Source: Octopus sinensis
Lineage: Eukaryota
Assembly (NCBI RefSeq): GCF_006345805.1
Contig: NC_043000.1
Coordinates: 11,470,001 to 11,534,000, forward strand
DNA: 64,000 bases
Direction of reading: 5' to 3'
The number at the start of each line of letters is the position of its first letter. The stretch's first letter is position 1. Below the pieces are notes generated by a model, which saw nothing but the letters and a program-made list of their open reading frames with translations, was not told the DNA's origin and did no database searches. The position numbers and the translations under genes are program-made. This document shows, one piece after another, positions 4,743 through 60,358 of this stretch.

Positions 4743-4849
4743 TTCTGAGTAAAGTTTTCATGGAAATACCATACTTTTCATTATTTCTACTTATTCTTTT
4801 GGCTTCTATTGTGGTCTTGTTAGAACCCTTGATGCTAAAATACGGGTAA
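4743..4849 (-). CDS. Gene A exon 5 ([35 protein letters not shown])
   Basis: gtttcag|T TAC CCG TAT TTT AGC ATC...AGA A|gtatgt, 107 nt, open frame; paralogous to 60243-60358. Confidence 0.8.
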
Positions 4850-7800
4850 CTGAAACTAATATATTAAAATTGATAAATTTAATAAAAATCATTATAAATA
4901 ACTTAAATAAATAAATTTAATAAAAATAGATTAAATAAAAATAATAAATTAAATAAAAATAATAAATTAAATAAAAATGATAAATAATAAATTAGATAAT
5001 AAATTAATAAAAATAAATAAATAATTAAAAAAATAATAAATTAAATAAAAATAAATTAAATAAAAAATAAATTAAATAAATAAATTAGATAAATTTAATA
5101 AAAATCATTATAATTAACACTTTTACGAATTGTATTTACAATCAATTCTGTTTAATTAAATCAATGAGGTCATCATTTCGTCTCTGATATAAGTGAGTGT
5201 TTTATACCCGGTTTCGTATTCATGATATGGAAGGTAGAAATGACATCTAATTTGGGTAAGTCAGATCTTGTTAAGTCAGCTTCAGTTCGGCTGTGATCAT
5301 GGGGGGTCTGCGGATCAAAGGCATCATCATCATCATTGTTCGACCGTGGTCAAGACAATGGAATTTACTATGTTACGCCAGAATTCACGGTCCATCATAG
5401 CATTACGGAGGTCCTGTTGCTGGATGCCTGTATTCCTGGAGATTACAACAGGGTAGGAGAGTGTGCGCCCTCTGGTATCGCGAGCAGATGGCTTCCAGAG
5501 GAGAAGAGTAGAAATTACCTTGTTTTCAGCTCTACAACAATGTCCAGCAAACTGGACTCTTCTACCTTTCACAAGAGATGATACAGGTGGTAATTTCCCA
5601 TATATTTGTACTTTGGTTGGATGACGCTTCCACGAGAGATTTTGAGCTCTCATAAGGAGGCAAGTGTAAGTTCCATCCAACCGCCGCTCAAGCTTCTTTG
5701 ATAACGTAGATTTCTGAGCCATATAGTAGAATTGGTTTGACTGTGGCTTTGAAGATTTTAAGTTTGAAATCTCTACTTAGATTTGATGACCAGATCTTAT
5801 GCATATCATAACAGGCTGACCAGGCCATACCCTTTCTAGTTAGAAAATCTTTTTCAGATGATGAAGTTCCATCCAACCGCCGCTCAAGCTTCTTTGATAA
5901 TGTCCAGGTTTCTGAGCCATATAGTAGAATTGGTTCGACTGTGGCTTTGAAGATTTTAAGTTTGAAATCTCTACTTAGATTTGATGACCAGATCTTATGC
6001 ATATCAAAGGCATTCCAGCCATGACAATCCTGTCATATTCCCTTCCTAGACAGAGTGTATGTCAAACCACATCGACCAATGATAGTACAGTCTTATTTGA
6101 GATTGTAATAGAAGACATGATATTCCATCGACTCCCACCTGTTCTATCATTTGGAATCATGTACATTTTAAAAATAAAGAATGCAGTGTTTTTAGCTTTA
6201 AAAGACGAAACAGTTGCTATGCAACTCCAACTTGTGTCACACAGATGTGTTTTGGGAAAAAAGTGACCAGCTTAAAAGCATAGGTTCCAAATTTTTAATT
6301 AAAAAAATTTATACAAAGTTATGGTGGATAAAGTGGTAATTGGCACTCTGTCAGTTATGACGTCGAGGGTTCCAGTTGATCCGATCAATGGAACAGCCTG
6401 CTCGTGAAATTAGCGTGCAAGTGGCTGAGCACTCCACAGACACATGTACCCTTAACGTAGTTCTCGGGAATCCTGTATATTTAAAAAATAAAGAATGTAG
6501 TGTTTTTAGCTTTAAAAGACGAAACAGTTGCTATGCAACTCCAACTTGTGTAAACAGGTGGGTTTTGGGAAAAAAGGGGATTAAAGAAGGGGTGTCAGAA
6601 GACTGAGGTTCTAGATTAGAAATTTAGGAAATGAGTTTGTTACGAATGAGACACAAATTGGTTTATATCTGTAAACTGTCCTTTTAATTATTGATTATGA
6701 AAGTGTTCAAAAGACCAATTACAAAATAATTAAAAGATGTTAATTACAAGTAAAAAGATAATATATACTTCTCATTGAAAGTAAGGTTCTGTAGAACCCA
6801 GCCCTTCCATGGAGTTACAATGGCTTTGTCTTTCTGGAACCACGATGTAGAATTTGTTCCTATACCGTTGAAAACGAAAATACTTCTATTCCATCTTCTA
6901 CTCAACCGAAATCTAACCTGCAAATAGAAAGTTAACTGATCCGTAATGAATGTAAGAAAGAGAGGGAAGATAGAGTGGTATAAAGAGAAAGGAGGAGGTT
7001 ATGATGTGATACAGGGAGAGAGTAGGAGGGAGAGAAGGAGACAGAGGGAAAAATGGAGGAAGAGTGAGAGTAAGAGAGTGAGAGAGTCTGAAAGCAAAAG
7101 ACAGAAGGATTAGAGAAGGTAGAGAGAGAGAAGAAGCGAAAGTGAGGGAAGATAGAGTAGTATAAAGAGAAAGGAGGAGGTTATGATGTGATACAGGGAG
7201 AGAGTAGGAGGGAGAGAAGGAGACAGAGGGAAAAGTGGAGGAAGAGTGAGAGTTAGAGAGTAAGAGAGTATCAGAGCAAAAGAGAGAAAGATTAGAGAAG
7301 GTAAAGAGAGAGAGAGAGTGAGAGATAGATAGATAGATAGAAAGAGAAAGAGAGATAGATAGATAGATAGAAAGAGAGAGATAGATAGATAGAAAGAGAA
7401 AGAGAGATAGATAGATAGATAGATAGATAGAAAGAGAGAGATACAGAGAAAGAGAGAGAGAGAAGAAGAAGCGAAAGTGAGGGAAGATAGAGTAGTATAA
7501 ATAGAAAGGAGGAGGTTATGATGTGATATAGGGAGAGAGTAGGAGGGAGAGAAAGAGACAGAGGGAAAAGTGGAGGAAGAGTGGGAGTAAGAGAGTGTCA
7601 GAGCAAAAGAGAGAAAGATTAGAGAAGGTAAAGAGAGAGAGAGAGAGAGAGAGAGAGAAGGAAATACAAAATACCAATTAAAGAAGTGTAAGATTAAGAT
7701 AGAGGGAGAGAAAGAATTTGGATTTAGGGGAAAAAACATGGGTGATTAATAAGACAGAAAATCGGATTAATAACTAATAAGTTATGATTTCGGAGTCTTT

Positions 7801-10800
7801 GTAAAAGATTCGTTGCATCTATGAGAAGTAGAAAACCCTGACGAAATCAGAACAAAAGCAAAAGATAAAAGCAGCAAGAATCAATCCCAACTCAATGTAA
7901 CATTGATATTCTGTGGAGGTGTAGTGGATGCGTGGATGTATTAATAAATACATAAGTGCTTTGTAATAAATTAAAGATTTATTATCACTACATCAATTTG
8001 TAAGCAATGTTACACATCGCTTGTACAAAATGCATATTAAATAGTGGTTGCAAATAATACATATTAAAGGAATGCATAATACAGGATACACATTAAAGCA
8101 GAATATGTTTGATGGTGCGTGTGTGTGCGTGTGTGTAAATCATGCATGACAGAGTCACCTTTCTGATTATTCTTTCGTCGTCCTCATAAATGCGTGTCGT
8201 TCTCTTAAACGTTGGTTCGGGTTCTCTCTAGATACCTATTTCTCCGTTCTATTTATAACATCTCAAATAGCCAGAAAAATAGATATACCGCAAGAGTGTT
8301 ATTGCGTACAGTAGGTCGCTGGTCGTCCTGTTAAACTTCGCCTGACCTGCTCGGGTCAGAGGTCGAAGGGAGACGATCCATCATTTTTTGTCAGAACAAA
8401 GAGATTCTGATTTCGCGCCTTTTTGTGCATTGGTATTTTACGACCAATGATTCTTGGGTCTGATTTCGAATCCAAGCTTTGAGAAGGAAGTGCTAATTCT
8501 TACACTACCCCCCTTCTAGTGAGAAAGCCACAGAGATCGAACGATATTGGAAATGTATTATTATTATTATTTTTATTATTTATTTATTTTTTTTTTTTTG
8601 ATTGTGTGCATGTAGAAAAAAATTTTTTTTACACATTGAACGATAAAAATATGGATGAAAGGTTTACAATTTGTATGTGCTATATGGTGGGCAATATGTA
8701 TATGTGCCCAGGCAGAATTATGTTGGCGCGTTGAAAGAGATGTGCGTCTATTGATTACTCGACCTACTAGAGGTCTAATAGAGACAAGGTATCTTTCAGT
8801 GGCGAAAAAAAAAATCGAGTGATAGCACGCATGAGAACAAGATTTGTAAATGTGTGTGGATATACAGTTAGCAAAAAAATATATTTATGAGAAAGCAAAC
8901 ATTTTGAAAAGAAAACAAAAAATATGTACATGCAAAAATGAAAGAAATGTTCATCGGCAAAGTTCGATTTTGAAATGTTCCGTAAAAGTTCATACAGACA
9001 GTTTTTGTTTTCATTTTTTTTTTCTTTACGTACACAAATGTTCTTTGATTTCTCTGGGTGGGTGATGCAGTTATGTGTTCATTAGGAAGATGGATACGTT
9101 AGGAGTTCAGAACTTACCCGAAAAACTTGCACAAACCTTGCTGGCCATCGAACTGTTCTTCCTGATTTGGTGTGTCGGGGTTGTGCAGCATCTGTGGTGT
9201 TCGCTGGAGTTGCCGAGTCTGTTTGAGGAAAAGAGGGGACTGAATGTAAGTCCTCCTCGATGAAAGCTTTTTTTAAACGATCAATCGAGACCGTATTTCG
9301 TTTACCTCCAATATCGAGGACGAAATACTTGGGTTCTCTTTTGATGACCTTGTAGGGCCCGGAATATGGTGGTCGAAGTTGAGAGGGTATCCCATCATTC
9401 CTCACGAAGACATGAGTCCATGTGTTGATATCTTTTGGGACACGTGAAACGACGTTCTGTTGTCTAGGGCCTGAGGGTGATACTTGCGACATGGATGTTC
9501 GTAATCGGTGCACATATTGTTGTGGGTCAGGGAAGTTTTGTGAAACAGGTTCGATCATCTGCCCAGGTAAGGTGAGTGTTGTGCCATAAACGAGTTCGGC
9601 CGGAGTATATCCCAGTTCTTCCTTAATCGTGGATCGAATTCCAAGGAGGATGAGAGGGAGATGTTCCAACCAGTGAGAACTGTCTGGAGCTGCTTTTATA
9701 GATGCCTTGAGTTGGCGGTGAAAGCGTTCCACCATGCCATTTGCTGCAGGGTGGTAAGCTGTAGTGCGGGTGTGTTTACACCCGAGGAGACGAGTCAGCT
9801 CGGTGAAAAGGTGGGAATCGAACTGACGTCCTCTGTCGGTGGTAATTGTTGCGGGTGTGCCAAAACGCGAAACCCATTGTGATATCAGCGTTTTAGCGAC
9901 CGTTTCTGCTGATATATCAGATAGGGGCCAGGCTTCGGGCCATCGCGAGAACCTATCTACGCAAGTTAGCAAATATGAATAGTTCTGCGAAGGTGGCAGG
10001 GGTCCAACGATATCAATGTGAACGTGCTGAAATCGTGCATCGGGCTGCGAAAATGAACCGATTGGTGATTTTATGTGCCGGTGGATTTTCGCTTTTTGGC
10101 ACGCAACACAGCACTTGGTCCATTCTCTGATATCCTTGTTGATACTGGTCCACACAAAACGGGTCGATATTAGCTTTTGAGTGGAGCGAATACCAGGATG
10201 TGACAGAGAATGTAGAGCGGAGAAAACTTCTCGACGATATTTCTGTGGTACATAAGGGCGTTGGTAACCAGTGGAAATATCACACCAAATATGGGCTGTG
10301 GATGATGGTAGTGGAACATGCTGAAATTTCAGAGATGACGAATTCCGGAGCTTTAGAAGTTCTTCGTCATTCTCCTGGTCAGCTGCTATACGTGCCAGAT
10401 CAATTGTAGACGTGGTGTGGATAGCATTGATCTGCGCACGTGAAAGTGCATCGGCTGCCACGTTGGTCGTCCCTTTGATGTGGCGTATATCCGTCGTGTA
10501 CTGCGATATGAAGTCGAGGTGACGAATTTCTCTCGGCGAATGGCGATCCGGTTTGGTGTTAAATGCGTATACTAATGGCTTGTGGTCGGTATATATGGCA
10601 AAATTGGTACCTTCTAGCATATGACGGAAATGCTTAACGGCCAGGTATGCCGCCAATAATTCCCGACTGAATGTGCTGTATTTGGTTTCCGCGGGTTTTA
10701 ACCGCTTAGAAAAGAAAGACAACGGTTGCCATATACCGTCAACAAGCTGTTGTAGCACACCTCCGATTCCGGAATCGGATGCATCAACGAGTAAACATCG

Positions 10801-20200: not shown

Positions 20201-23200
20201 CCAACATCAATTTTCAAGCGGTGATATTTTACAAACTTCTTGTTATTCCGCTTCGGAATATTTATTCTTCGTCGTTCTAATTTGAGCTGCTCTTTCATTG
20301 CTCCCCAAACTTCTCTTGAACTTGTTTCAGTCATATCCCTTAAATCATGCTCTACCATTTTATAAAAGATAGAACTCAATGGATAATCTAATTATACACA
20401 TTTCGTGTATGAAAATAAGTCAGGGTATCAAAACTGGATTCGGTTTGTCACTAAAGGTTAAACTTCGAGAACAAAATGTTGAGTAGCAAGAGCACTAACG
20501 ACATACGCCATTGCAATATTGACAGAAAAAATAAAAATAATAAATGCACCCTTTTTAAAGCCTAGCCAGGCTCATGGACCCGGTTTCCCGGTTTCAATGG
20601 CGTATGTGTTCCCCCAAGCTGGACGGGATGCCAGTCCATCGCAGCATGGATCTTTTCCTTTTGAACAGCAGATGTCAACACAATTTCTAGTTAACTAAAC
20701 ACTTTTAAACTTCGTATACTGGTAGAATGTGTTTATAAAACATCACTTTCTCTTGGTTTTATTGAGAAATTCTATAGTTTGTAAGATATTTCGTCTGAAA
20801 ATCCGAGCATTTCGGCAATTTTAACCAATCGAATACCTCCATTCAACTAAAATCATTTTATGCGTCTAAAACTGAGACAACATTCTGTAACTAACCCTAA
20901 ACCTCCCCCTAACCTTAACCCTAATTCTTTTTTTTATTAATTGTTAAATTAATTTAATTCCATTGCTTTAGTTTTTTTTACACGCGTAACAATTAAATTA
21001 ATTTAACAATTAAGAAAAAAAAATTAAGTTTAGGATTAGGGTTAGCGGGGAGGTTTAGGGTTAGTTACAGGATGTTGTCTCAGTTTTAGACGCAGCAAAT
21101 GATTTTAGCTCAAATTAAAATTCGAAAAATTAAACTACGTTAAACAAACAAATTACAATTTTCTCAAGAAAGCCAAGAGAAAAAATGTTTTATTTTGACA
21201 CATTCTACCAGTATACAAAGTTTTAAAGTGTTTAGTTAACTAGAAATTGTCTGCCGTTCAAAAGGAAAAGATCCCGCAGCATTACTCAATAAAACAGGAA
21301 GAATGTGTGAGAGAAAGTTGCGACGAAAGAGTACAACAGGGGTTGCCACCCCCCCTGCCGGAGCCTCGTGGAGCTTTAGGTGTTTTCACTCAATAAACAC
21401 TCACAACGCCCTGTCTGGGAATCGAAACTGTGAGTCCGCTGCCATAACCTCCGCAAATAAATGCAACCTTTTAAAGCCTAGCCAGGCCCATGGGCCTGAT
21501 TTCCCAGTTACTACGGCGTATGTGTTCCCCAGCTGGACGGGATGCCAGTCCATTGCAGCGTTACTCACTTTTGCCAGCTGAGTGGACTAGAGCAACGTGA
21601 AATGTAGTGTTTTGCTCAAGAACACAACGCGTTGCCCAGTCCAGGATTCGAAACCACAATCTTACGATCATGATGCGGACACCTTAACCACTAAGCCACG
21701 TGCCTCCATACTCCAAAAGATAGCGGATTGACAAATATGTAGACTATTTATTAAATGAAATAATTTTGAAATTTCGAAAATTCCTTACCTTTTCAATAGG
21801 CAACTTGTCCCAGTATAAATAAATAGGACTTCTTTTGAATGAGTTTTCGTTCATCTCAAATACTTTCTGCCATTTTGTACCTGTATCAGCATTAAATAGT
21901 AATCATTAATTTAGATATAAGCGTATAAACAAGATGTTAACCCTTAAACGGCAGGAAAGGGTTACATGAATGTGTGTGACAAACGGGTAAAAAATATCTT
22001 TTAGGGATCATCATCATCATCATTTAATGTCCGCTTTCCATGCTAGCATGGGTTGGATGATTTGACTGAAGTCTGGTGAACCAGACTCCAATCTGATCTG
22101 GCAGAGTTTCTACAGCTGGATGCCCTTCCAAGGTTTATGATATCAGGAGAATATCGTCTTCTTCCATTATCTCTTTTTGTTCTTCGGATAGTTCAGGCTC
22201 CGGCAGGCGAAGAGAGAAGACTTCAAGTGCAAATGCTATTTACAACTGGTTCATTTACAAGTTTCACAGGATAGGGGAAGTGTGCTGCTCTCAGCAACCA
22301 TTTTTAGCTGTGTGCGTTGTGTAGTAGCTCCGTTAGTGCGGGCACATTACCTCTAGAGGTACAACATACAGACAGGCCCCGCCAGTGAAGTGTGTTCAGC
22401 AAGCGCTGCTGCTAAGAGGCAGCAAAAGAGAGGAAGAATCTCAATCTGTTTTGCCCTTATATACAGTTTACCTTCGCGAGCCTTGTTGTGATCTTGCGCT
22501 TGGCAAATGGATGCAGGTGAGATCTCGCTCCAGTCTCGGAGATGGAAATGGCTGCCGTGAGATCTCATCCAATATGGTGCTGACTGCTTGTGCCACTACA
22601 CATTTCTAATCTGATTATCTAAAAGTGCCGTAAAACATTCACTTTCTTTTGCACCCATTGTGAGCATCAATACATTTGAGATTCCAGCTGGTTAACGGCA
22701 CACATTCTGTGTCTGATTAGTATTTACAAGGGGAGGTCATTGCACCCATCCTTAGCCTTACAGTTTTCCTGGGGCTATAAACGTCAGTAGCACTGTCCTG
22801 TATGGGACACCACACTTGGTTGGCAATTATATGCTACATTTCTGTATTACTACTGTTTACATCTCAGTGGACATGTTTACAAAGTCAGAAAACAGCACAT
22901 CTCCCATGACTTTCGTAAACATTTTTTCATGCTAAGAGTTGCTGAAGCATGGAACAAACTTCCGGCATCAGTTGTTAGTTGTCGGAGCACTGCATCCTTC
23001 AAAACTTCCATTTCCTGAGAATCGCCAACACTACACCTGATTTTCTCCCCTCCATACACACGCAAGCATGTATCTGACTCATACATTGTTCGCTTTCCAA
23101 ACATTTCTACATTACTGCATGTACTTTATACGCACTTTTGACAAGTTGTGGTGCATCTGAGCACTGTATACAATAATTTCATTATTATTATTATTATATA

Positions 23201-24141
23201 TATATTTGGAATTTGCAAAAAAAAAAAAACAAAGCAAAAGACGAAGATAAGTGTATAAACAACAAACAGGTGTATTAGTTTAACGCTCAGGAAAGTGAGA
23301 AAGTCTTTTACGTTTTGAGCCTACGCTCTTCAGCAGAAAGGAACACGAGAAAATAAACAGAGAGAATAAAATAAAAAGCTTTAGTGGCTAGTGGTCGATC
23401 ATGGCAGCTGGCTGGACAGAGGTGGTCAGATAGGAGAGCTAGGAAGAAGGGGAGATAATAAAGTAGTGGTGATCCCAAAATGAAGGTGTGCGTGCATGTG
23501 TATGTGAGAGCGTGTATTGGGGCTGGTGACCTTGACTGACATAGGGTCAATGATGCTAAAATTTACAAAAGCAGAAGACAAGAAAATTATGATTTACTTA
23601 CGCGTATCAGAGAGCAAAATATACGATGAACAGTTACAATCATAATCTTTAATTTCTTTGTCGTAAAGCAATCGGTGCATATAACATGAACCATTACAGT
23701 AGCTAAAATATTGGCACTTCAGGTGCAAAACACACCGAAGTGCACATTCTTCAGTAGAAGATGTGTTTACAAGAATCTTCATCTGATCAATTAAGCATTT
23801 TGATTTACTGATTTCCTTGAAAATGACTTCGTCACATGTTGATTCTCCAGTTAATGGAGTCATGGAAAATACGAGAGTCAAGGCTAGCGGCAATATGAGA
23901 ATCAAAGGATATTGAATTGGTGTTTCCATTCCTGAAAAATATACAAGTATACCAGTATACATACATACATACATATGCGCGCGCGCATACATATCCACAC
24001 CAATACACCCATACATCGAAACACGCACACATACATGTGGATCTATCTGTATATCTATCTATCTACCTATTTACCTATCTATCTATGTATCTACCTATCT
24101 ACCTGTCTATGTATCTATCTACCTACCTATCTATCTGTCTG

Positions 24142-27195: not shown

Positions 27196-28359
27196 TTTAT
27201 CTGACGGGTTTCTTTCAGTTTTTGTCAACCAAATCCTTTCACAAGGGTTGGATCGACTCAGAGCCCTTGTAGAATGCGCACCTGTCCAAGGTGCGACGAA
27301 GTGGGACTGAATCCGGAACCTTGTCGTTGGTAAACAAACTTTTAACTGCGCAGGCACGCCTGCACCTAAAAATAGCGGCGTTATCATGCCGGGAATCGAA
27401 CCCGGACCGATTGGGTGAAAGCTAGGAATCATAACTACTACAGACTTAAATATTACTCATTATCTAAAAACAATAACGTTTTTTTTTTCATGGGTAGAAA
27501 TGCAGGAATTTTCTAAAGCAAAATTATATAATCGATTAGATTCACCTCTCGGATATTACACGATCGTTATTGGGAATTTTCGTTAAATATGAAAGGGAAA
27601 GCCGAATCGGGGCTAGATTCACTGATTCCTTCATTCACTGTCCTCTTTCTCCACTTAGGAGACAGACAGACGAAGGTGAAACGGTAAGATATGAAATCAA
27701 AACGTAAGGTTTCGTAACTGAATACTAATAATGTCAGTCGATCCACTGTTTATGCAAATTCACCTCCCGTCCTTTCCATTCTCAGTGGAAACGGGAATGA
27801 TAACGGTAAACCTAATGTAATGAAAGCACAAAGCAGCTACAATATTTTGTGATACAGAATTATAAAAACAATTTTAGTTATTATCTATCTTTTCATTCCT
27901 AATATATATTTCTTTATTGCCCACAAGGGGCTAAACACAGAGAGGACAAACAAAGGGTTTAAGTCAATTACATCGACCCCAGTGCATAACTGGTACTTAT
28001 TTAATCGACCCCGAAAGGATGAAAGGCAAAGTCGACCTCGGCGGAATTTGAACTCAGAATGTAAAGGCAGACGAAATACCTATTTCTTTACTACCCACAA
28101 GGGGCTAAACACAGAGAGGACAAACAAGGACAGACAAACGGATTAAATCGATTACGTCGACCCCAGTGCGTAACTGGTACTTAATTTATCGACCCCGAAA
28201 AGATGAAAGGCAAAGTCGACCTCGGCGGAATTTGAACTCAGAACGAAGTGGCAGACGAAATACCGCTAAGCATTTCGCCCTGCGTGCTAACGTTTCTGCT
28301 GCCAGCTCGCCGCCTTTTTCATTCCTAATATCATTAATTCACTTACCTTTAAGGTTCAT
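4743..28359 (-). CDS. Gene A: secreted PAN/apple-domain protein with an uncharacterised C-terminal domain; 5 exons found, 3' end unresolved
   Basis: Five GT-AG exons splice in frame (phases 1,1,0,2; open phase-1 end): [27 protein letters not shown]...[22 protein letters not shown]...[12 protein letters not shown]...[13 protein letters not shown]...[16 protein letters not shown]...NLTFNE-N-YPYFSI...LLR. Every exon has a counterpart in gene B. Confidence 0.85.
4870..5120. repeat. AT-only minisatellite (ataaattaaataaaa)n
   Basis: Directly visible. Confidence 0.85.
5322..6005 (-). mobile_element. 5'-truncated LINE 3' end (RTE-related) with a duplicated 5' segment
   Basis: [20 protein letters not shown]...RRVQFAGH...; (TGA)n tail; 5669-5806 repeated at 5865-6004. 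Confidence 0.8.
6769..6917 (-). CDS. Gene A exon 4 ([49 protein letters not shown])
   Basis: tttgcag|GTT...GAG AA|gtatat, 149 nt; paralogous to 53134-53285. Confidence 0.85.
6962..7660. repeat. GA-rich compound repeat with three copies of an approximately 110-bp unit
   Basis: gagggaagatagagtagtataaagagaaaggaggaggttatgatgtgata at about 6962, 7146 and 7478. Confidence 0.85.
7920..8504 (-). repeat. 3' LTR
   Basis: No difference from 13219-13803 seen by eye. TATAAATA at 8250-8257 and AATAAA at 7978-7983 on the minus strand. Confidence 0.97.
8505..8517 (-). other. Polypurine tract
   Basis: AGAAGGGGGGTAG directly before the 3' LTR on the minus strand. Confidence 0.85.
9082..12249 (-). CDS. pol: Pol polyprotein (PR-RT-RNase H-IN), -1 frame relative to gag
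   Basis: FLVDTGA protease, YIDD RT, DAS/TDHKPL/ADALSR RNase H, HHCC + DDE integrase and GPY motif; no stops. Confidence 0.96.
12225..13100 (-). CDS. gag: Gag (291 aa)
   Basis: [23 protein letters not shown]-terminus; C-x2-H-x9-C-x3-C (CWYH...C...C) motif typical of the CsRn1 lineage. Confidence 0.93.
13206..13216 (-). other. Primer-binding site (tRNA-Trp type)
   Basis: TGGTGACCCCG, 2 nt after the 5' LTR; complementary to the 3' end of eukaryotic tRNA-Trp (...CGGGGUCACCA). Confidence 0.8.
13219..13803 (-). repeat. 5' LTR
   Basis: Direct repeat of 7920-8504, followed on the minus strand by the PBS. Confidence 0.97.
14561..14623 (-). ncRNA. Hammerhead ribozyme-like motif (type I variant) in the PLE1 3' repeat
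   Basis: AGAUAA-CCGAAGA-GAUG..CAUC(U)-GAA-ACUCAGAGU-U-UUAUCU. Confidence 0.6.
17086..17148 (+). ncRNA. Inverted copy of the PLE1 hammerhead-like motif
   Basis: Reverse complement of 14561-14623. Confidence 0.6.
17431..17735 (+). mobile_element. tRNA-derived SINE family 3
   Basis: ggaggcacaatggctctgtagttagg head. Other pieces at 3703-3830 (+), 21305-21450 (-), 48375-48690 (-) and 48715-48840 (+). Confidence 0.85.
17760..19975 (-). mobile_element. Penelope-like element 2, internally deleted (RT core missing, GIY-YIG retained)
   Basis: ORF 18905-20023: KDHKANF...CRLINPAK joins directly to the thumb/linker and VVYRAKV...YTGASE GIY-YIG. Long 3' UTR with a hammerhead motif; (TA)n at both ends. 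Confidence 0.88.
17792..17829 (-). ncRNA. Minimal type I hammerhead motif at the PLE2 3' end
   Basis: CUGU-CUGAUGA-ACG GCAA CGA-GAA-ACUCAGAGU-A-ACAG. Confidence 0.7.
20648..21274. mobile_element. Foldback MITE with about 140-bp TIRs and 8-bp TSD (Merlin- or hAT/P-like)
   Basis: TIR GGATCTTTTCCTTTTGAAC; TSD cgcagcat at 20640-20647 / 21275-21282; inner palindrome with taaccctaa/ttagggtta motifs. Confidence 0.85.
21455..21710 (-). mobile_element. tRNA-derived SINE family 5
   Basis: ggaggcacgtggcttagtggttaagg head; a 3' fragment at 20545-20647 is the target of the foldback MITE. Confidence 0.8.
21789..21880 (-). CDS. Gene A exon 3 ([30 protein letters not shown])
   Basis: gatacag|GT...AAG|gtaagg, 92 nt; 25/30 aa identical to 52309-52400. 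Confidence 0.88.
22010..22130 (-). mobile_element. Short copy of the RTE 3' end
   Basis: (cat)n followed by gtccgctttccatgctagcatgggttgga. Confidence 0.7.
22600..23190 (+). mobile_element. CR1-type LINE 3' fragment
   Basis: [41 protein letters not shown] followed by an (att)n tail. The upstream block 22480-22600 also occurs inverted at 4560-4670. Confidence 0.75.
23602..23931 (-). CDS. Gene A exon 2: signal peptide + PAN/apple domain
   Basis: Acceptor tttttcag|GA ATG and donor C|gtaagt. Hydrophobic N-terminal stretch followed by the C-x3-C-x5-C-x2-F-x-Y...C PAN pattern. Confidence 0.88.
24188..24830 (+). mobile_element. Two short 3'-end copies of the same Tx1-like LINE embedded in (TATC)n
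   Basis: Matches 33765-34260; both copies end aataaagaaaca|tatctatc. Confidence 0.85.
25270..25592 (+). mobile_element. Short copy of the RTE 3' UTR with 3 tandem units
   Basis: ctgtgccggtggcacgtaaaaagcacc repeats and (gat)n tail. Confidence 0.8.
25603..26041. mobile_element. Tc1/mariner (pogo-like) MITE
   Basis: TA|CCGTAAATCCTCGA...TCGAGGATTTACGG|TA. Confidence 0.85.
26275..26905. repeat. (CA)n/(TACA)n microsatellite array
   Basis: Directly visible. Confidence 0.95.
26987..27021 (+). ncRNA. Degenerate minimal hammerhead motif
   Basis: GUUU-CCGACGA-A-GAGC UCC GCUC-GAA-ACGU-C-AUAC. Related decayed copies at about 23302-23342 (-) and 48265-48282 (-). Confidence 0.45.
27375..27450 (-). pseudogene. 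tRNA-Glu-like pseudogene or SINE head
   Basis: gtagtagttatgattcctagctttcacc...ccgggttcgattcccgg; stems poorly paired. Confidence 0.45.
27906..28315 (-). mobile_element. SINE family 2, tandem-body form with 16-bp TSD
   Basis: TSD ttttcattcctaatat at 27890-27905 / 28316-28331; absent from the paralogous intron of gene B. Confidence 0.9.
28347..28359 (-). CDS. Gene A exon 1, coding part (MNLKG)
   Basis: ATG AAC CTT AAA G|gtaagt. Same context as 43229-43241, and in frame with exon 2. The second ATG in exon 2 could be the real start. Confidence 0.65.
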
Positions 28360-28855
28360 GACTGTTTCAGAGTTGTTAAATAAACTTCACTTTCAGCCGA
28401 TAAAATGAATAAGCAGACGTGTCTCACTGGAAACAATGTCGTCTGCATTTAATGTCACGCTTTTCTCGTTTCGATAAACAGGCTTTCTTTTATTTATTTC
28501 TATTCTCTTTGTTCTGACAATTCAAGAATAACTTAGGATATTTCACAGTTGATTTCTATTTGCATTGACTTCGAAAGATAAGCTTTTAAACTTATCTCTA
28601 GATTTGTTCCACTCTTATAAATATAGTTGCTCAACTAGAACTTTATTTCTCTCCAATTCTTGAAGCTGTCGGCAGGTTATTCAGCATTTTTAAAACAAGT
28701 TCTCAAACTTGTGGCCTTATATTGTCATTTCCTTCTCTTCAAGATACTTTGATTTCAAAGTTATCCGTTTCACTTTCAGCTTCGTTAGTTTTTCAATCAG
28801 TGGCCGCATCTATCCAACGATCTTTGCAAATACACCTCTAGAAACGAGTCACCTG

Positions 28856-28863
28856 TATTTATA
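28856..28863 (-). promoter_or_regulatory. Putative TATA box of gene A
   Basis: caagcgTATAAATAca, conserved with 42740-42747; about 500 nt upstream of the exon-1 ATG. Confidence 0.45.
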
Positions 28864-28971
28864 CGCTTGATGAACAAAACAATTTTATGTCAACTTCGCA
28901 ATATATCGATAGCTTTTGATCTGCTTATGTTTAGCATTTTGCAGATAATAAATTACACACAATAAATTATA

Positions 28972-41752: not shown

Positions 41753-42739
41753 AATATATAAATATTAGGGATAAGTTCAAATATTAGGGACAATAAAATC
41801 TAGCGAATATATTGGTTTATTATCTATTACAAGAATTATTGAATATTTCAGCACAACTTTCTCTCACTCTTACTTCCTACTTCTGCCACAAAGGAACCAT
41901 GGTGTAACACACTATGGTGTGGTAAACTTTCAGACCCTAGTCTAGATTGCAAATCCTCTGTACCCCCAGGATGTTTCAGCTCTCCACTCGTTAAAAGCCA
42001 CCGTTTATGGAATGAGGATAACAACGTAGCTTTCGCGCCCGTGCAACCGCCAGTCTATCGAGTGTGGTGGGTGGATCTTCAAGTTGCCATACGCATTCTT
42101 AGTAGCTTAGATTAGGCTCAAATTAGAGATTATTCTTTGTGGCTAATGGTGTGAGTCCTGATTGGAAGAAGAAGAAGACAACAGCAACAGGAACAACAAC
42201 AACACTAGACTACCAAGATTCCACTCTCTTCTATTACAGTGACATACGCTTCTCTGAATTGCTGACTTTACCCCAAATCGTCTTTCATTTGTCCGTCATT
42301 TCAAAAATTTTTAGATTTTTAATTCTGCAATAATTGTTATTTTTCTTCGAGGTTGTTTCTTTTAACTAGTGACATGTGTAACGCATGGAGGATAGATAAA
42401 CATGAATCGAACCAACCTTAATATGTTATTAATACCCTTATCGATCGGAAGGAAATCTGTCATCAACAGTGAAGATTGTTTCCTAATCAAAATGGGAATC
42501 TGTAATGTTTAAACCTTTCTTGGAGGACATTATCAAATATTTACTTGAAACTATAATAAAAACTTAAACAAGCTTTTTATTCCTTCAAGGCCTTAACTCT
42601 CTACTTGCTATTATCGATCGTATTTCATGCAACAGCATGAAGTATGATTTATCGTCTTCAAAAGGCAAAACTTAAGAAGCCGATTGAAAGCTATTGATAT
42701 ATTGCAAGGTTAATATAAAATTGTTTTGTTCACCAAGCG

Positions 42740-42747
42740 TATAAATA
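42740..42747 (+). promoter_or_regulatory. Putative TATA box of gene B
   Basis: caagcgTATAAATAca inside the A/B-homologous upstream block. Confidence 0.45.
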
Positions 42748-43228
42748 CAAAGATCAATGGATAGAAGATTTCATTAACTGGAAAACTAACGAAGCTGAGA
42801 CTGAAACTCATAACTTATTTATAATCTTGAAGCAAAATATATTGGGGAGAAAAAAAACGACGATATAAGACCACAAATTTAAGACCGTGTTTAATGGAAA
42901 GTGAAATAACTTGGTGACAACTTCTAGAGTTAGAGAGGAAGAAATTCTAGTTGCGCAGCTTCTTTATAAGGGTGGGAAAAAAATCTGGAGATATAGTTTT
43001 AAGAACTTATCTTTTGGAACGAATGCAAGAAGAGATCAACTGTGAATATCCTAAGTTTTTTTTTTGAATTGTCAGAACGAAGACAATAGAAATAAATGAA
43101 AGAAAGCCTGTTTATCGAGACTAGAAAAAAAACATTAAAAGGCAGACGACATTGTTTCCAGTGAGACACGACTGCTTATTCATTTTATCGGTTGAAAGTG
43201 AAGTTTATTTAACAACTCTGAAACAGTC

Positions 43229-43241
43229 ATGAATCTTAAAG
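43229..43241 (+). CDS. Gene B exon 1, coding part (MNLKG)
   Basis: ATG AAT CTT AAA G|gtaagt. Confidence 0.65.
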
Positions 43242-46580: not shown

Positions 46581-46606
46581 ATTATTGTATATTTTTCATC
46601 TTTCAG

Positions 46607-46925
46607 GAATGGAAACATCAATTCAATATCATTTGATTCTCATATTGCTGCCAGCTTTGACTCTTTTTGTGACATCTATAGCAGCAAAATCAGAATGTAC
46701 CCGAGTCTTCAGGTGAGATAACTGCCAAAAAAATGCTTATTGTTCAGAATAAAAAAACTGATAACGCATCGTCTGCTGAAGACTGTGCAAGTCGGTGCAT
46801 TTTATTCAATAAGTGCGAATATTTTAGCTATTGCAATGGCTTATGTGATATGCAGCATCCTTTACGAGGAGAAATTCAAGATTACGATTGCAGCTGTTCA
46901 TCGTACATTTTGCTCTCTGGAAACG
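46607..46925 (+). CDS. Gene B exon 2: signal peptide + PAN/apple domain, with +1 frameshift
   Basis: tttcag|GA ATG GAA ACA ... GGA AAC G|gtacgt. ORFs 46534-46716 and 46733-46933 are the two halves (DCASRCILFNKCEYFSYCNGLC). Confidence 0.85.
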
Positions 46926-47032
46926 GTACGTAAATCACAATTTTCTTTTATGTTTTTTTGTAATTTTTAGCGCCATTAACTCTGTTATACTCACTACACA
47001 CACGCGCACACGCGCACATTCTTTTTTCTTTT

Positions 47033-49482: not shown

Positions 49483-49560
49483 ATGATGATGAAGAAAAGA
49501 AGAAGAAGAAGAAAAGAAGAAGAAGAGAAGAAGAAGAAGAAGAAGAAGAAGATGATGATG

Positions 49561-49592
<32 letters not shown>

Positions 49593-49610
49593 GATGATGG
49601 TGATGATTTG

Positions 49611-49656
<46 letters not shown>

Positions 49657-49813
49657 GGTGATGGTGATGGTGATGATGATGATGATGATGATGGTGATGA
49701 TGAGTGATGATGATGATTATGATGATGGTGATGATGTTGATGATGATGATGATAATGATAATGATGATGTGATGATGATGATGGTGATGATGATGATGAT
49801 GTGATGATGATGA

Positions 49814-49866
<53 letters not shown>

Positions 49867-50021
49867 GGTGATGGTGATGGTGATGATGATGATGATGATG
49901 ATGGTGATGATGATGTGATGATGATGATTATGATGATGGTGATGATGTTGATGATGATGATGATATGATAATGATGATGTGATGATGATGATGGTGATGA
50001 TGATGATGATGGTGATGATGG

Positions 50022-50076
<55 letters not shown>

Positions 50077-50121
50077 GGTGATGGTGATGGTGATGATGAT
50101 GATGATGATGATGGTGATGTG

Positions 50122-50159
<38 letters not shown>

Positions 50160-50171
50160 TGATGATGATGG

Positions 50172-50203
<32 letters not shown>

Positions 50204-50365
50204 ATGATGATGGTGATGATGTTGATGATGATGATGATAATGATAATGATGATGATGATGATGATAATGATGATGATGATGATGATGGTGATGGTGATGA
50301 TGATGACGTGATGATGATGATGATCAAGACGTCGACGATTACGACGACGATGATAATGATGATAT
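49483..50365. repeat. (GAA)n then long degenerate (GAT)n array
   Basis: Directly visible. Confidence 0.95.
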
Positions 50366-50623
50366 TCTAGATAGCAGAGAAGAAAGTCACGCTTCAACTA
50401 GCTCTTGATCGATGAAGCGTACCAACATTTCTCAATTTGTTCATTCATTTGACACCAACAACAATACAGGAATCTGAAATGAATTTCTGCTCACAACAAG
50501 TACAAGGAAGGTATTTTACTGCACTTTTCGGTAATCCGAATGGAAAGGTTATTGTTAGAGAGACTCAGAATTATTTTAAAATTTGTACTTATTTAAAGTG
50601 GACATAAGAGTAAAAATTTGCCT

Positions 50624-50784
50624 TAGGAGTGGCTGTGTGGTAAGTAGCTTGCTTACCAGCCACATGGTTCTGGGTTCAGTCCCACTGCGTGGCATCTTGG
50701 GCAAGTGTCTTCTACTATGGCCTCGGGCCGACCAAAGCCTTGTGAGTGGATTTGGTAGACGGAAACTGAAAGAAGCTTGTCGTA

Positions 50785-50818
<34 letters not shown>

Positions 50819-50833
50819 CGTGTGTGTGTGTGT

Positions 50834-50865
<32 letters not shown>

Positions 50866-51073
50866 TTGTGTGTCTGTGTTTGTCTCCCCAACATTGCTTG
50901 ACAACCGATGCTGGTGTGTTTACGTCCCCGTAACTTAGCAGTTCGGCAAAAGGAGACCGATAGAATAAGTACTAGGCTTACAAAGAATAACTCCTGGGGT
51001 CTATTTGCTCGACTAAAAGCGGTGCTCCAGCATGACCGCAGTCAAATGACTGAAACAAGTAAAAGAGTAAAAG
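50624..51073 (+). mobile_element. SINE family 1 copy
   Basis: Matches 2701-3098. Confidence 0.9.
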
Positions 51074-52308: not shown

Positions 52309-52400
52309 GTACAAGCTGGCAGAAAGTGTTTGAGATGACTCAAAACTCATTTAAAAGAAGTCCAATTTATTTATACTGGGACAAACTGCCTATTAAAGAG
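52309..52400 (+). CDS. Gene B exon 3 ([30 protein letters not shown])
   Basis: gatacag|GT...GAG|gtaatg, 92 nt. Confidence 0.88.
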
Positions 52401-53133: not shown

Positions 53134-53285
53134 GTGAAATTTCAAGTGAGAAGACCATATAATAAGGACGACTTCATAATATTCAATGGGAAAGGGACGA
53201 ATTCTACATCGTGGTTCCAGAAAGATAAAATCATTGAAATTTCAAACAAGGAATGGGTTCCACTGAACCTTACTTTCAATGAGAA
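53134..53285 (+). CDS. Gene B exon 4 ([50 protein letters not shown])
   Basis: ttttcag|GTG...GAG AA|gtatat, 152 nt. Confidence 0.85.
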
Positions 53286-53762: not shown

Positions 53763-56700
53763 CATCATCATCATCATCATCATCATTTAGCGTCCGTTTT
53801 CCATGCTAGCATGGGTTGGACGGTTTAACTGGGGTCTGTGAAGCCGGAAGGCTTCATCAGGCCCAGTCATATTTGGCAGTGTTTCTACGGCTGGATGCCC
53901 TTCCTAACGCCAACCACTCCGCGAGTGTAGTGGGTGTTTTTTACGTGCCACCTGCACAGGTGCCAAACAGAGCTGGTACAACGGCCACGAACGGATGGTG
54001 CTTTTACGTGTCACAGGCACGGGGCCAGGCGGTGCTGGCAACGGACACGAACGGATGGTGCTTTTACGTGCCACCGACACGGGGCCAGACAGAGCTGGCA
54101 AACGGCCACGAACGGACGGTTCTTTTACGTGTCACCGGCACGGGGGCCAGCCGAGGCTGGCAACGAACACGAACGGATGGTGCTTTTACGTGCCACCGAC
54201 ACGGGGCCAGACAGAGCTGGCAAACGGCCACGAACGGACGGTGCTTTTACGTGTCACTGGCACGGGGGCCAGCCGAGGCTGGCAACGAACACGAGCGGAT
54301 GGTGCTTTTACGTGCCACCGACACGGGGGCCAGACAGAGCTGGCAAACGGCCACGAGCGAATGGTGCTTTTACGTATCACCGACACGGGTGCCAGACGAG
54401 GCTGGCAGCGGACACGGATATATGATTTGATTTTGATTGTTCTCACTGGTCTTGCCGGGTCTTCTCACGCACAGCATACTTCCACAGGTCTCGGTCTCTG
54501 GTCATTTCCTTGGTGAGACCTAGAGTTCGAAGGTCGTGCTTCACCACCTCGACCCAGGTTTTCCTGGGTCTACCTCTTCCACAGGTCCCCTCAACTGCCA
54601 GGGTGTGGCACTTTTTCACACACCTATCTTCGTCCATTCTCGCCACATGACCATACCAGCGCAATCGTCTCTCTTGCACACAACATCTGATGCCTCTTAG
54701 GTCCAACTTTTCTCTCAAGGTACTTACACTCTGTCGATTATGAACACTGACATTACACATCCAACGGAGCATACTAGCTTCATTTCTTGCGAGCTTACGT
54801 AAATCCTCAGAGGTCACAGCCCAAGTTTCACTATCATGTAGCATGGCTGTACGTACACATGCATCATACAGTCTGCCTTTTACTTTGAGCGAGAGGCCTT
54901 TTGTCACCAGTAGGGGTAAGAGCTCTCTAAACTTTGCCCAGGCTATTCTTACTCTAGCAGTTATACTTTCAGCACACCCGCCCCCGCTACTGACTTGGTC
55001 ACCTAGGTAGCGGAAGCTATCAACTACTTCTAGTTTTTCTCCCTGAAACGTGATAGAAGTTGGTCTCTGCATATTTTCAGAGTTTATTGCTCCTGAGCAT
55101 CTGCCACAGATAAAAACTATTTTCCTAGTTAGTCTTCCTTTGACATTACTACATCTCTTATGTGTCCATAGCTTACATTTGGTGCATCTTATAGAGTTTC
55201 TACCTACGCCTTTTCTACAGATCGAGCAAGGCCATCTACCTGAAGGCGTTTGTGATTGGTCTACCTTCCTACTTATTAGGACTTTGGTTTTGGCTAGGTT
55301 GATTCTAAGGCCCTTCGATTCTAAACCTTGCTTCCACACCTGAAACTTCTCCTCCAGTTCTGATAGAGACTCAGCAATTAGAGCAAGGTCATCAGCATAG
55401 AGGAGCTCCCAGGGGCATCTAGTCTTGAATTCCTCCGTTATTGCCTGAAGGACTATGATAAATAGGAGGGGGCTGAGGACTGAACCTTGGTGGACCCCAA
55501 CCTCTACCCTGAATTCTTCACTGTATTTGGTGCCAACCCTCACCTTACTAGCAGCGTCTCTGTACATGGCTTGTACAGCTCTCACTAACCATTCATCTAT
55601 CCCTAGTTTCCTCATTGACCACCAGATAAGGGATCGGGGGACCCTGTCGAAGGCTTTCTCCATATCGACAAAAGCCAGGTATAGGGGTTTGTCTTTGGCT
55701 AGGTATTTCTCCTGCAGCTGTCTTACCAGGAAAATAGCATCAGTAGTACTTTTCCCTGGCACGAACCCAAACTGCATCTGATCTAAGCTAACTCTCTCTC
55801 TAATTTGTTGGGCTATAACCCTCTCCGTTACCTTCATTACCTGATCTAGCAGCTTGATACCCCTGTAGTTATTTGTATCTAGGGCGTCACCTTTACCTTT
55901 GTAGTAGTTAACTATTATGCTGCTACACCAGTCATTGGGAATGACTCCTTCGTGTATCATCTGGTTAACTATACGGGTGACTAGGCTATAGCCAGCACTA
56001 CCAGATATTTTGAGCATCTCTGCAGTAATTCCTGATGGGCCTGGGGCTTTCCCTGTTTTCATGCTTCTAATTGCCTTATCTACTAAGGAACTATCAACTC
56101 GGATTGCTGGTCCCTCTGTTGGGTCAACATTCGGCAGACTCTCTTTATCCCATTCATTTTCCTCATTCAGCAACCTTTCATAGTGGCGTCTCCAAACCTC
56201 TCTCTTTGCATCCTCATTTAGCGCAAGTGAGCCATCATCCTTGCGAACACATTTCTCTCCTACCATGTCACGATTCTCTCTCACACACTGTCTTGCAACA
56301 CGAAATATCTCAAGTCTTTCATCTTCACGGCGCAGGACATTGGCAAATTTTTTCTTATCTGCTTCCCCTCTGGCTAAATACAACTGCCTCCTAGCCTCCC
56401 TTCTTGCAGTCTGATACACTTCCCTGCTACCACCGTTCTTCCAGTCCTTCCAAGCCTGTTTCTTTTGTCTAATAGCCCTGTCAACAGTATTGTTCCACCA
56501 CCACGTTATTTTGGGTCTTGTGGGGACTTTGTACCAGCCACAGATCTGGTCTGTGGCTTTCAGCAGGTTGTCCCTTAGAAGCGCCCAGTTATCTTCTACC
56601 CCATGTGTAGCTATACCCCCTTCTATTTCGTCGAAGGCTTCAAGTAACATGTCTCTAAATCTCTGTCCATTTGCAGGGTCTTTAAGCTTCCAGACCCTTC

Positions 56701-57880
56701 TTCTCCATGTTGGTCGTCTTCTAGTTGTCCTCTTAGTCCTGATTCTAAAGTCACTGACTACCAGTCTATGTTGTGGGGTACACTCTTCGCCTGGGAAGGT
56801 TTTGGCATTTATAAGCAGCCATCTTTCCCTTTTTCTGGTAAGGATGTAGTCGATTTGGCTAGTATGCTGGCCCGAACGGTAGGTGACCAAGTGGCTTGTC
56901 GGTTTCCTGAAGTTAGTGTTGCAAACCATAAGACTATTCGCATCACAGAACTCCAGCAGCCTGGTTCCCTCCTCATTGCGAGAACCATAACCATAGCCTC
57001 CATGAACGCCATAGAAGCCCTCAGCATATCGTCCAACATGCCCATTGAAGTCACCACCCACAAAGAGAAGGTCCCTGTCGTTCGTCAGTGAGGTGGTCTG
57101 TAGTAGGGTGTCATAGAAACGGTCTTTCTGTCCATCGGGTAGCCCTGGCTGAGGGGCATATGCCGATATAATAGTTGCTAAACTATGATGGATCACTAAA
57201 CTAATCTTCAGTATTCTGTCACATACTCTGACTACCTCGATTACCTTACCTACCCATTTTTCGGCAATAAGCATACCTACTCCCCCGACCCCTTCAGTAT
57301 TCCCAGCCCAGAAAATCTTGTACCTCTGTCCTTTACCTGTGAGGAACCTAGCAGAACCTCCTCTCCACCTCACCTCTTGAACACAGCATATATCCACACA
57401 CCTTCGTTAAGCAATTCAACGATCTCGCCAGATCTGCCTTTCAGTGTGCCAACGTTGAGGGTGCCAATCCTGAGGGAGTGGGAGGCATTGGACCTAGTAG
57501 CATCATGAACCTGAAAAGAAAACTCGCGTTTGGCAGAATTCATAAACAGACAATTAAACCTAAGTTCAAACCGCGTACGTTACCAATATATCTTGCAATG
57601 AATGACCACTACCATTTATGGAAGGAGGAGCAAGTGGCGTAGACAACAGGGATGCGAAGTGTACATGGGAGATAGACATGTACATGGGAGACAACAAGGA
57701 TGAGAAAATTTTGGACTTCCTGTAGCAGTGGGGACAGTGTAAAACTTAAAGTGTACATCAGAGACAGCGATGAGAAAATTTTAGGCTTCCTGTAACGGTG
57801 GAGGGGGTGGGAGGGCGGGCGAACCCCCGCGAAAATCGGCCGCCTGCGAAAATCGGCTGCCTGCAAAAATCGGCCGCCAT
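53761..57880 (-). mobile_element. Near-full-length RTE-clade LINE
   Basis: 984-aa APE+RT ORF; N-terminus (LRIGTLNVGTLKGRSGE) in another frame at about 57400-57480; 3' UTR with about 60-bp tandem repeats and (ATG)n tail. 5' boundary approximate; no TSD seen. Confidence 0.92.
54443..57397 (-). CDS. RTE LINE ORF (AP endonuclease + reverse transcriptase)
   Basis: CVQEVRW, GDFNGH, SQIDYIL, QHRLV (APE); QFGF, DMEKAFD, VHQGSVLSP, YADD (RT). Confidence 0.93.
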   Translation of the reverse strand: MDICCVQEVRWRGGSARFLTGKGQRYKIFWAGNTEGVGGVGMLIAEKWVGKVIEVVRVCDRILKISLVIHHSLATIISAYAPQPGLPDGQKDRFYDTLLQTTSLTNDRDLLFVGGDFNGHVGRYAEGFYGVHGGYGYGSRNEEGTRLLEFCDANSLMVCNTNFRKPTSHLVTYRSGQHTSQIDYILTRKRERWLLINAKTFPGEECTPQHRLVVSDFRIRTKRTTRRRPTWRRRVWKLKDPANGQRFRDMLLEAFDEIEGGIATHGVEDNWALLRDNLLKATDQICGWYKVPTRPKITWWWNNTVDRAIRQKKQAWKDWKNGGSREVYQTARREARRQLYLARGEADKKKFANVLRREDERLEIFRVARQCVRENRDMVGEKCVRKDDGSLALNEDAKREVWRRHYERLLNEENEWDKESLPNVDPTEGPAIRVDSSLVDKAIRSMKTGKAPGPSGITAEMLKISGSAGYSLVTRIVNQMIHEGVIPNDWCSSIIVNYYKGKGDALDTNNYRGIKLLDQVMKVTERVIAQQIRERVSLDQMQFGFVPGKSTTDAIFLVRQLQEKYLAKDKPLYLAFVDMEKAFDRVPRSLIWWSMRKLGIDEWLVRAVQAMYRDAASKVRVGTKYSEEFRVEVGVHQGSVLSPLLFIIVLQAITEEFKTRCPWELLYADDLALIAESLSELEEKFQVWKQGLESKGLRINLAKTKVLISRKVDQSQTPSGRWPCSICRKGVGRNSIRCTKCKLWTHKRCSNVKGRLTRKIVFICGRCSGAINSENMQRPTSITFQGEKLEVVDSFRYLGDQVSSGGGCAESITARVRIAWAKFRELLPLLVTKGLSLKVKGRLYDACVRTAMLHDSETWAVTSEDLRKLARNEASMLRWMCNVSVHNRQSVSTLREKLDLRGIRCCVQERRLRWYGHVARMDEDRCVKKCHTLAVEGTCGRGRPRKTWVEVVKHDLRTLGLTKEMTRDRDLWKYAVREKTRQDQ

Positions 57881-59900: not shown

Positions 59901-60242
59901 GTATGTGTATATCATCATCATCATCATCATCATCAATATTATTATTATTATTATTCAGGTCACTGCCTGGAATCGAACTCGGAATCTTGGGGTTAGTAGC
60001 CTGCGCTCTTAACCACTATGCTATATGCCCACGGGCATATGGCGTAGTGGTTTACCCAAATTACATGCCATTTTTATCTTCTATATCATGAATCTGGGTA
60101 TGAAACATGCACTAATATCAGAAATGAAATAATAAACTCATTGATTTAATAAAACAAAACTGATTTTTGTAAATAAAATCGTAAAAATTTTCTTCGTAAT
60201 AATTTTTATCAAATTTATCAATTGTAATATGTTGGTTTTCAG

Positions 60243-60358
60243 AGACCCGTATTTTAGCATCGAGTGGGAAGTTCAAAGTCAAGGAAAACGATTTCACGCT
60301 GCTAGAAAAGAGGGAAGCCATAAAGAGTTTGATATTTCTGTCAAAAACGAAGACGATA
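60243..60358 (+). CDS. Gene B exon 5 (DPYFSIEWEVQSQGKRFHAARKEGSHKEFDISVKNEDD)
   Basis: gttttcag|A GAC CCG TAT TTT AGC ATC...GAT A|gtaagt, 116 nt. Confidence 0.8.

Follow-up and report, generated by a model that had tools for sequence, protein, structure and literature searches.

Two divergent genes of a lineage-expanded octopus protein family lie head to head in a 64,000-nucleotide stretch of the Octopus sinensis contig NC_043000.1 (C4:11470001-11534000, hereafter the window), gene A on the minus strand and gene B on the plus strand. Both encode a signal peptide, a PAN/apple domain and a second, uncharacterised C-terminal domain (CTD), the architecture that an original prediction had read from the DNA letters. 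On balance we favour the reading that the pair belongs to a secreted PAN-CTD family whose products are extracellular binding or recognition proteins. Homology places the two genes as divergently transcribed six-exon members of a family that is restricted to Octopus, has been amplified in tandem and encodes proteins of ~245 residues. The novelty is the uncatalogued CTD rather than the gene pair: the partner of the PAN domain is a confidently modelled, compact β domain that is absent from Pfam and the PDB and conserved from molluscs to cephalochordates.

In a blastn self-comparison of the window the inverted exon pairs are collinear with 75-87.5% identity (E 1e-45 to 1e-73). Dispersed repeats apart, no other long inverted matches run collinearly between the halves of the window than these exon pairs and the ~600 bp before each ATG. 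The five predicted exon pairs and their GT/AG sites are real on both strands, with the reservation that exon 2 of gene B is off frame as assembled. The motifs WQKVF, YWDKLPI and PYFSI and one further motif of 12 residues each occur exactly once per strand, and both genes carry the sequons NTS/NAS, NST and NLT, as had been described. In gene A the splice sites are canonical AG/GT throughout, the phases are compatible (1, 1, 0, 2, 1) and the spliced reading frame is open. The junctions first proposed for it (28347/23931, 23602/21880, 21789/6917 and 6769/4849) are all valid, canonical and in phase, and only the last acceptor is better moved. Exon 5 offers two acceptors in tandem, spaced by 6 nt (ttag/TTTCAG/TTACCC, slashes marking the cuts). 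Use of the upstream one, 4855, gives NENFSYPYF, for which neither the O. bimaculoides ortholog nor the family consensus NENFSxPxF requires an alignment gap; for this reason 6769/4855 is, by homology, most likely the true junction. With this acceptor the six exons of gene A encode 248 residues over a span of 30.8 kb.

The last exon of each gene lies outside the window. The proteins of the family terminate in a short hydrophobic strand, which is missing from the in-window models, and a motif search for the last exon inside the window found none. Examination of 20 kb of flank on either side revealed one terminal coding exon per gene, each with a polypyrimidine-AG acceptor in phase 1, which supplies the 3' ends that the original prediction had left to be found. 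Gene B then extends over 24.7 kb in six exons, and its exons 3-6 are open.

Exon 2 encodes the PAN domain and, ahead of it, the hydrophobic signal-peptide core. Taken singly, neither gene reaches the Pfam gathering cut-offs (21.4 bits for PAN_1 and 27 for PAN_4), gene A scoring 18.1 and 19 bits and gene B 16.4 and 13.6 bits, which sets them apart from classical PAN/apple proteins. At the family level the assignment holds: the more distant relatives P0067, P0052, P0056 and P0079 exceed the PAN_1 cut-off, and the family profile searched against the PDB finds apple domains in Toxoplasma MIC4 (E = 8.9e-7) and, more weakly, in factor XI (0.12). A first AlphaFold model of full-length P0001, built from 18 sequences, was poor overall (pLDDT 53.6), with residues 50-90 at pLDDT 73-85 and folded as one helix with flanking strands. 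Like the apple domains of MIC4 and of factor XI/prekallikrein and the N domain of plasminogen/HGF, the family PAN is a cysteine-rich module of ~80 residues, and it may share their central helix on a β sheet; these known proteins are secreted and have a binding role. It differs from them in having eight conserved cysteines (five invariant and three nearly invariant in the family alignment) in place of the classical four to six, and in being paired with a domain never described beside PAN.

That domain exists in two forms. The short octopus CTD comprises ~135 residues, contains no cysteine, is predicted to be all-β and carries N-glycosylation sequons. Pfam searches of the two genes and ten relatives gave weak PAN matches only and nothing for the CTD, and the profile search of the PDB likewise returned PAN matches only. 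A CTD profile run against 1.84 billion representative sequences recovered 102 proteins, among them a long form of ~175 residues with four conserved cysteines. The long form follows PAN in octopods, in Argonauta and in the bivalves Dreissena, Mytilus, Mercenaria, Mizuhopecten and Saccostrea, which bears out the original prediction's placing of the motif set in unannotated molluscan proteins. In amphioxus it occurs as four repeats with fn3 and ZP, with EGF and a C-type lectin domain, and with PAN and EGF; in the sea star Acanthaster it is preceded by D8C (uromodulin-type) domains, in a mollusc SVEP1-like protein it is accompanied by Sushi domains, and it is also found in the hemichordate Ptychodera and the bryozoan Watersipora. 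The homologues span six phyla or subphyla, are found solely in extracellular mosaic proteins, and are all named uncharacterised or bear transferred names. They share with the CTD of the window a core of W..VF, R.P..D.W..LPI..VK, F(N/D)G....WF and a hydrophobic strand at the C-terminus, and in many of them PAN comes before this core. The long form adds C...C near its start and the segment GC..D.GWL...C.WE...YP.ILYS, both of which are missing from the short form, and the deuterostome proteins combine the domain with ZP, EGF, CTLD, Sushi or D8C domains, unlike the octopus short form. Sequence comparison identifies the short CTD as a trimmed version of an older extracellular module of ~175 residues.

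Structural comparison of the CTD was based solely on a second AlphaFold2 run, on the CTD of gene B (P0018, 73 sequences), the first being too poor. This model is of high confidence (pLDDT 93.3, pTM 0.86) and consists of eleven strands and one short helix. Foldseek against the PDB gave no match at E <= 1e-3 and none at a TM-score of 0.5, and a comparison with viral structures gave nothing meaningful. Across Pfam, the PDB profile search and Foldseek, no well-characterised family emerged as a match for the CTD; a match of that kind, with known cephalopod orthologs, had been named beforehand as grounds for rejecting the prediction. One candidate, DUF7922 (PF25538), was rejected, as its summed weak match was confined to the amphioxus protein P0030 and it was found neither in genes A and B nor in the family or genome.

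The extent of the family was assessed in the whole O. sinensis assembly (2.72 Gb in 13,516 contigs). The best octopus protein for gene A is P0001 (E = 4e-87, 98% coverage), and the annotated product of gene B, P0018, is itself a database member of the PAN-CTD family. The nearest proteins, from O. sinensis, O. bimaculoides and O. vulgaris, are 230-250 residues long and named "uncharacterized" or "Apple domain-containing". A six-frame search gave at least 50 matches to the PAN exon, a count that includes some small contigs on which C27 loci recur with the same scores, and the exon-by-exon pattern repeats at other loci. The matches cluster on C27 (17.0-17.46 Mb), on C8 (71.5-74.6 Mb) and in two blocks of C4, and also lie on many small contigs. 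The lineage expansion that had been proposed is thereby borne out. Members such as LOC118761055 and LOC118761791 (O. sinensis) and LOC106879016 and LOC106867736 (O. bimaculoides) are 55-86% identical to genes A and B, depending on the region, and share with them the signal peptide, PAN and CTD (~245 residues), the exon structure and the 5' module.

This 5' module is the ~600 bp preceding the ATG. The region upstream of gene A recurs at ~45 family loci genome-wide with 72-80% identity. In an alignment of 14 copies, which contain TATA-like boxes, identity is ~75-79% distally and reaches 83-90% over the ~250 bp nearest the ATG; at 72-90% overall, the module is as well conserved as the coding exons. 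From its sequence it looks like a shared promoter and 5' untranslated region (5'UTR), and the presence of a conserved putative regulatory module within the duplication unit suggests that family members are co-regulated.

The pair itself is old. Genes A and B share only 55% identity in the CTD (dS 0.60), and in a maximum-likelihood tree the two are not sister genes: gene A is sister to P0002 of O. bimaculoides (support 99/99), and gene B groups with P0007 of O. sinensis (100/99) and then with P0019 of O. bimaculoides. On O. bimaculoides CM046629.1 (1171764-1194746, a region with many N gaps) the orthologs of both genes (LOC106879016 for gene A, and its neighbour for gene B) are adjacent and head to head. 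The inverted duplication is therefore older than the split between the two species, the same head-to-head pair being found in both. Its proposed role in the origin of the pair agrees with the paralogs' arrangement, with the qualification that the event is an ancient one. The distance from exon 2 to exon 2 is 5.7 kb in O. bimaculoides and 22.7 kb in O. sinensis, and exons 2-6 of the gene A ortholog occupy ~3 kb as against ~26 kb; the larger introns of O. sinensis are due to transposon insertions.

Comparison with its ortholog gives gene A a dN/dS of 0.47 (Fisher p = 0.0013), divided into 0.32 for the signal peptide and PAN and 0.59 for the CTD; between genes A and B the CTD alone gives 0.58. 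Gene A has no lesion in its frame; the substitution ratios place it under purifying selection, with a fast-evolving CTD.

The reading frame of gene B is less straightforward, and it is here that the functional status of the pair has to be weighed. Exon 2 of gene B is 319 nt long, compared with 330 nt in gene A, and the frame shifts after ...SECTRVF. A second copy of this exon, at C4:11059605-11059926, has 322 nt and is likewise out of frame. Over ~320 bp, 8 small indels but just one substitution separate these copies, and the adjoining sequence that was aligned is identical. The indels, of 1-3 nt each, cluster at window positions 46700-46900, and every cluster is intact in one of the two copies, so that a mosaic of both restores an in-frame exon of 324 nt with all PAN cysteines kept. 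The O. bimaculoides ortholog has an intact exon 2 that agrees with the mosaic at 80% amino-acid identity. An excess of indels over substitutions is typical of unpolished long-read consensus and not of mutation, and the frameshift is accordingly read, with good confidence as far as sequence goes, as an assembly indel artefact. A 35-nt micro-intron was considered as a rescue of the exon and rejected, since the resulting frame is wrong. It is quite unlikely, by our estimate, that the frameshift is real and that gene B, or perhaps the whole locus, is decaying, with exon 2 skipped, the signal peptide lost and only gene A functional, if either is. The disrupted exon in both copies, the omission of exon 2 from the RefSeq model and a nonsense change in the second copy would all fit such decay; the indel signature against surroundings that are ~99-100% identical, the complementarity of the copies, the intact ortholog and the open exons 3-6 speak against it. 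Several observations do weigh against our preferred interpretation of two functional genes. The second copy of gene B has TGG changed to TAG in exon 4, so that one or more of the copies or alleles may be in decay. The RefSeq models end after exon 2 (gene A) or skip it (gene B), and transcript support for the six-exon forms may be weak; alternatively, introns filled with transposable elements and the frameshift may have defeated prediction. The protein collections searched contained no transcript-derived protein matching gene A. Finally, a dN/dS of ~0.6 in the CTD fits relaxed constraint as well as it fits diversification.

The fold of the CTD and the role of the family each admit a rival account. 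The original prediction had suggested a fibrinogen-like fold, and it is possible, if improbable, that the CTD is a fibrinogen-related domain (FReD) altered almost beyond recognition and the family a set of ficolin- or FREP-like lectins with PAN as their N-terminal part, the short form having lost the cysteine-bearing ligand-pocket subdomain. The geometry lends this some colour: fibrinogen-like domains, among them those of L- and M-ficolin, ANGPTL3, FGL1 and tachylectin 5A, head the Foldseek list in TM-score and probability, with at least 11 of the top 50 matches, and by eye the motif order of the long form appears FReD-like (GC..D.GWL...C for CA..GGWW..C, and AD.MAIFI for MKIRP). The best TM-scores are nevertheless 0.35-0.44 (0.38-0.44 for the top fibrinogen-like geometries), with Foldseek probabilities up to 0.87 and best E-values of 0.06-0.2, short of the thresholds given above. 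Fibrinogen_C is absent from the Pfam matches of genes A and B and their relatives even at E <= 10. Comparison by hhalign of CTD profiles (short and long forms together, or long only) with six single-exon FReDs of this octopus genome, and then with angiopoietin-2 and tenascin-R added, gave a probability of 0.3%; PAN, as already noted, was all that the family profile found in the PDB. The short CTD also does not have the disulfide cysteines of FReDs, their GGWW motif or the Ca2+ and ligand-pocket (P subdomain) motifs. Ficolins, tachylectin 5A and mollusc FREPs are thus the nearest solved geometries to the CTD model, all below a TM-score of 0.5, and the fibrinogen-like fold is an unproven, weak structural lead from modelling and not a classification. 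As secreted, multi-copy invertebrate recognition proteins, fibrinogen-related lectins offer a plausible functional analogy to the family, but they show no sequence or profile similarity to the CTD, and their cysteines, Ca site and P subdomain have no counterpart in it. The genome has only 15 exon-level Fibrinogen_C matches, in separate canonical FReD genes, against many dozens of copies of the short and long PAN-CTD families together. As to role, the main rival, which we regard as unlikely, holds that the products are structural parts of a secreted matrix (mucus, egg coat, sucker or cuticular lining) in which PAN and CTD act as polymerisation or cross-linking modules. In its favour are the amphioxus protein with four CTD repeats before fn3 and ZP, the sea star CTD after uromodulin-type D8C domains, the shared putative promoter with its suggestion of bulk co-expression, and the frequency of PAN domains in apical extracellular matrices (PMC4970718). 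Yet the octopus proteins are small, have each domain in single copy and no obvious polymerisation module, their CTD evolves fast, and a literature search found no proteomic evidence for such a role.

We return to extracellular binding as the probable role of the family. The secretory-type N-terminus and the sequons suggest that the products are secreted glycoproteins. PAN, the CTD or both would supply putative ligand-binding surfaces for glycans or for microbial or matrix proteins, and the family may diversify its specificities through duplication and fast evolution of the CTD, the shared putative promoter driving co-expression in one secretory cell type. A lectin, immune or secretion role may be inferred for the family as a whole; nothing in the analysis pointed to enzymatic or toxin activity. 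The literature search found no paper that deals with these loci or with PAN proteins of octopuses.

In current annotation both genes exist as fragments. They had been described as hidden, and this is true of the full two-domain products, which are in no database model for either gene, but truncated RefSeq models exist for both. Unlike the other family models, each is reduced to one domain. P0024 (LOC118762875, 116 aa) consists of gene A exon 1 and an exon 2 read into intron 2 (...SDTRK*), and contains PAN only. P0018 (LOC118762874, 140 aa) joins gene B exon 1 straight to exons 3-6, an omission that is probably a consequence of the frameshift; the annotated protein would not be secreted, because the hydrophobic core of the signal peptide sits in the skipped exon.

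The second copy of gene B belongs to a larger duplication. C4 has two copies of a block, 63 kb or more in length, that includes the gene pair; the copies have the same orientation, lie 453 kb apart and are 96-99.6% identical. The upstream copy (C4:11033339-11090000+) is collinear with the window from ~17175 to beyond 80706. Its left edge abuts a scaffold gap of 100 N, and gene A' ends there after exon 3. This second block is probably a product of assembly, namely a haplotig left in place or a false duplication; the alternative is a segmental duplication of very recent date. The cluster of indels in exon 2 points to a long-read consensus that was left unpolished, and gene prediction elsewhere in the assembly would suffer from this as well. 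The coordinates of both genes are collected in Table 1.

Table 1. Exons of genes A and B, their upstream modules and the main dispersed repeat (window positions unless stated otherwise).
Feature	Position	Strand	Remarks
Gene A, putative promoter and 5'UTR module	28360..28953	-	77% identical to region upstream of gene B
Gene A, exon 1 (coding part)	28347..28359	-	MNLK + G, phase 1; ATGAACCTTAAAG then donor gtaagt; in-frame stops upstream
Gene A, exon 2	23602..23931	-	330 nt; signal-peptide core and PAN/apple; AG/GT sites; weak PAN_1 and PAN_4 matches; identical to RefSeq P0024
Gene A, exon 3	21789..21880	-	start of CTD, WQKVF...YWDKLPIEK; 87.5% nucleotide identity to gene B exon 3
Gene A, exon 4	6769..6917	-	12-residue motif...NLTFNE; canonical splice sites
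Gene A, exon 5	4743..4855	-	NFSYPYFSI...KTLLR; acceptor originally 4849, 4855 preferred by homology; donor 4743 to exon 6
Gene A, exon 6 (terminal coding)	-2350..-2399 (C4:11467601-11467650), outside window	-	ends ...NNSIIYEILLISVRFN*
Gene B, putative promoter and 5'UTR module	42647..43228	+	family-conserved upstream region
Gene B, exon 1 (coding part)	43229..43241	+	MNLK + G; canonical sites
Gene B, exon 2	46607..46925	+	319 nt; signal peptide and PAN; frame lost as assembled
Gene B, exon 3	52309..52400	+	canonical sites; identical to P0018
Gene B, exon 4	53134..53285	+	canonical sites; matches P0018
Gene B, exon 5	60243..60358	+	canonical sites; matches P0018; donor to exon 6
Gene B, exon 6 (terminal coding)	67864..67913 (C4:11537864-11537913), outside window	+	ends ...SVFASYEALVISVIFM*
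~400-bp dispersed repeat	2700-3100, 28976-29866, 32183-32595, 40602-41081, 47020-47437, 50624-51073		

The introns of both genes are rich in repeats. Intron 3 of gene A contains a long terminal repeat (LTR) retrotransposon on the minus strand (window 7920-13518), whose 300-bp direct repeats (7920-8219 and 13219-13518) are 100% identical and which retains an open 1081-aa frame for protease, reverse transcriptase (RT), RNase H and integrase (9082-12327) and a gag-like DUF7041 frame (12225-13202); it looks like a young insertion. Intron 4 of gene B houses a long interspersed nuclear element, also on the minus strand (54443-57406), with an open 987-aa frame of endonuclease, RT and PHD-like segments. 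A zf-RVT fragment is located at 32872-33840. Related repeat frames on the minus strand at 14818-16705 and 18905-20050 share KCRLINPAK...GIISK motifs and cysteine-rich tails, and have no Pfam match. At least seven copies of the ~400-bp dispersed repeat of Table 1, some in each orientation and with 77-91% identity, lie around and inside both genes, and an ARAGORN scan found no tRNA-like head of a short interspersed element in it. Microsatellites of the (TATG/CATA)n type lie at 23936-24270, 26200-27050 and 45600-46600, in intron 1 of both genes just before exon 2, and poly-(CAT/CAC) tracts at 49380-50400.

The analysis provides corrected full-length models for two RefSeq loci now annotated as one-domain fragments, and flags an assembly artefact that distorts annotation, namely unpolished indels together with a probable false duplication. 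A wider proposal, which we put forward as speculative and rather doubtful, is that the CTD represents an undescribed ancient bilaterian extracellular fold, or an extreme fibrinogen derivative, which octopods trimmed, fused to PAN and amplified to dozens of co-regulated copies as a secreted recognition repertoire. If true, the family would be an octopus counterpart to the FREPs of snails or the C1q expansions of bivalves. Such a repertoire would offer a new protein scaffold for invertebrate innate immunity or mucosal biology, and a defined set of co-regulated genes, under one shared promoter, with which the secretory cell types of cephalopods could be studied.

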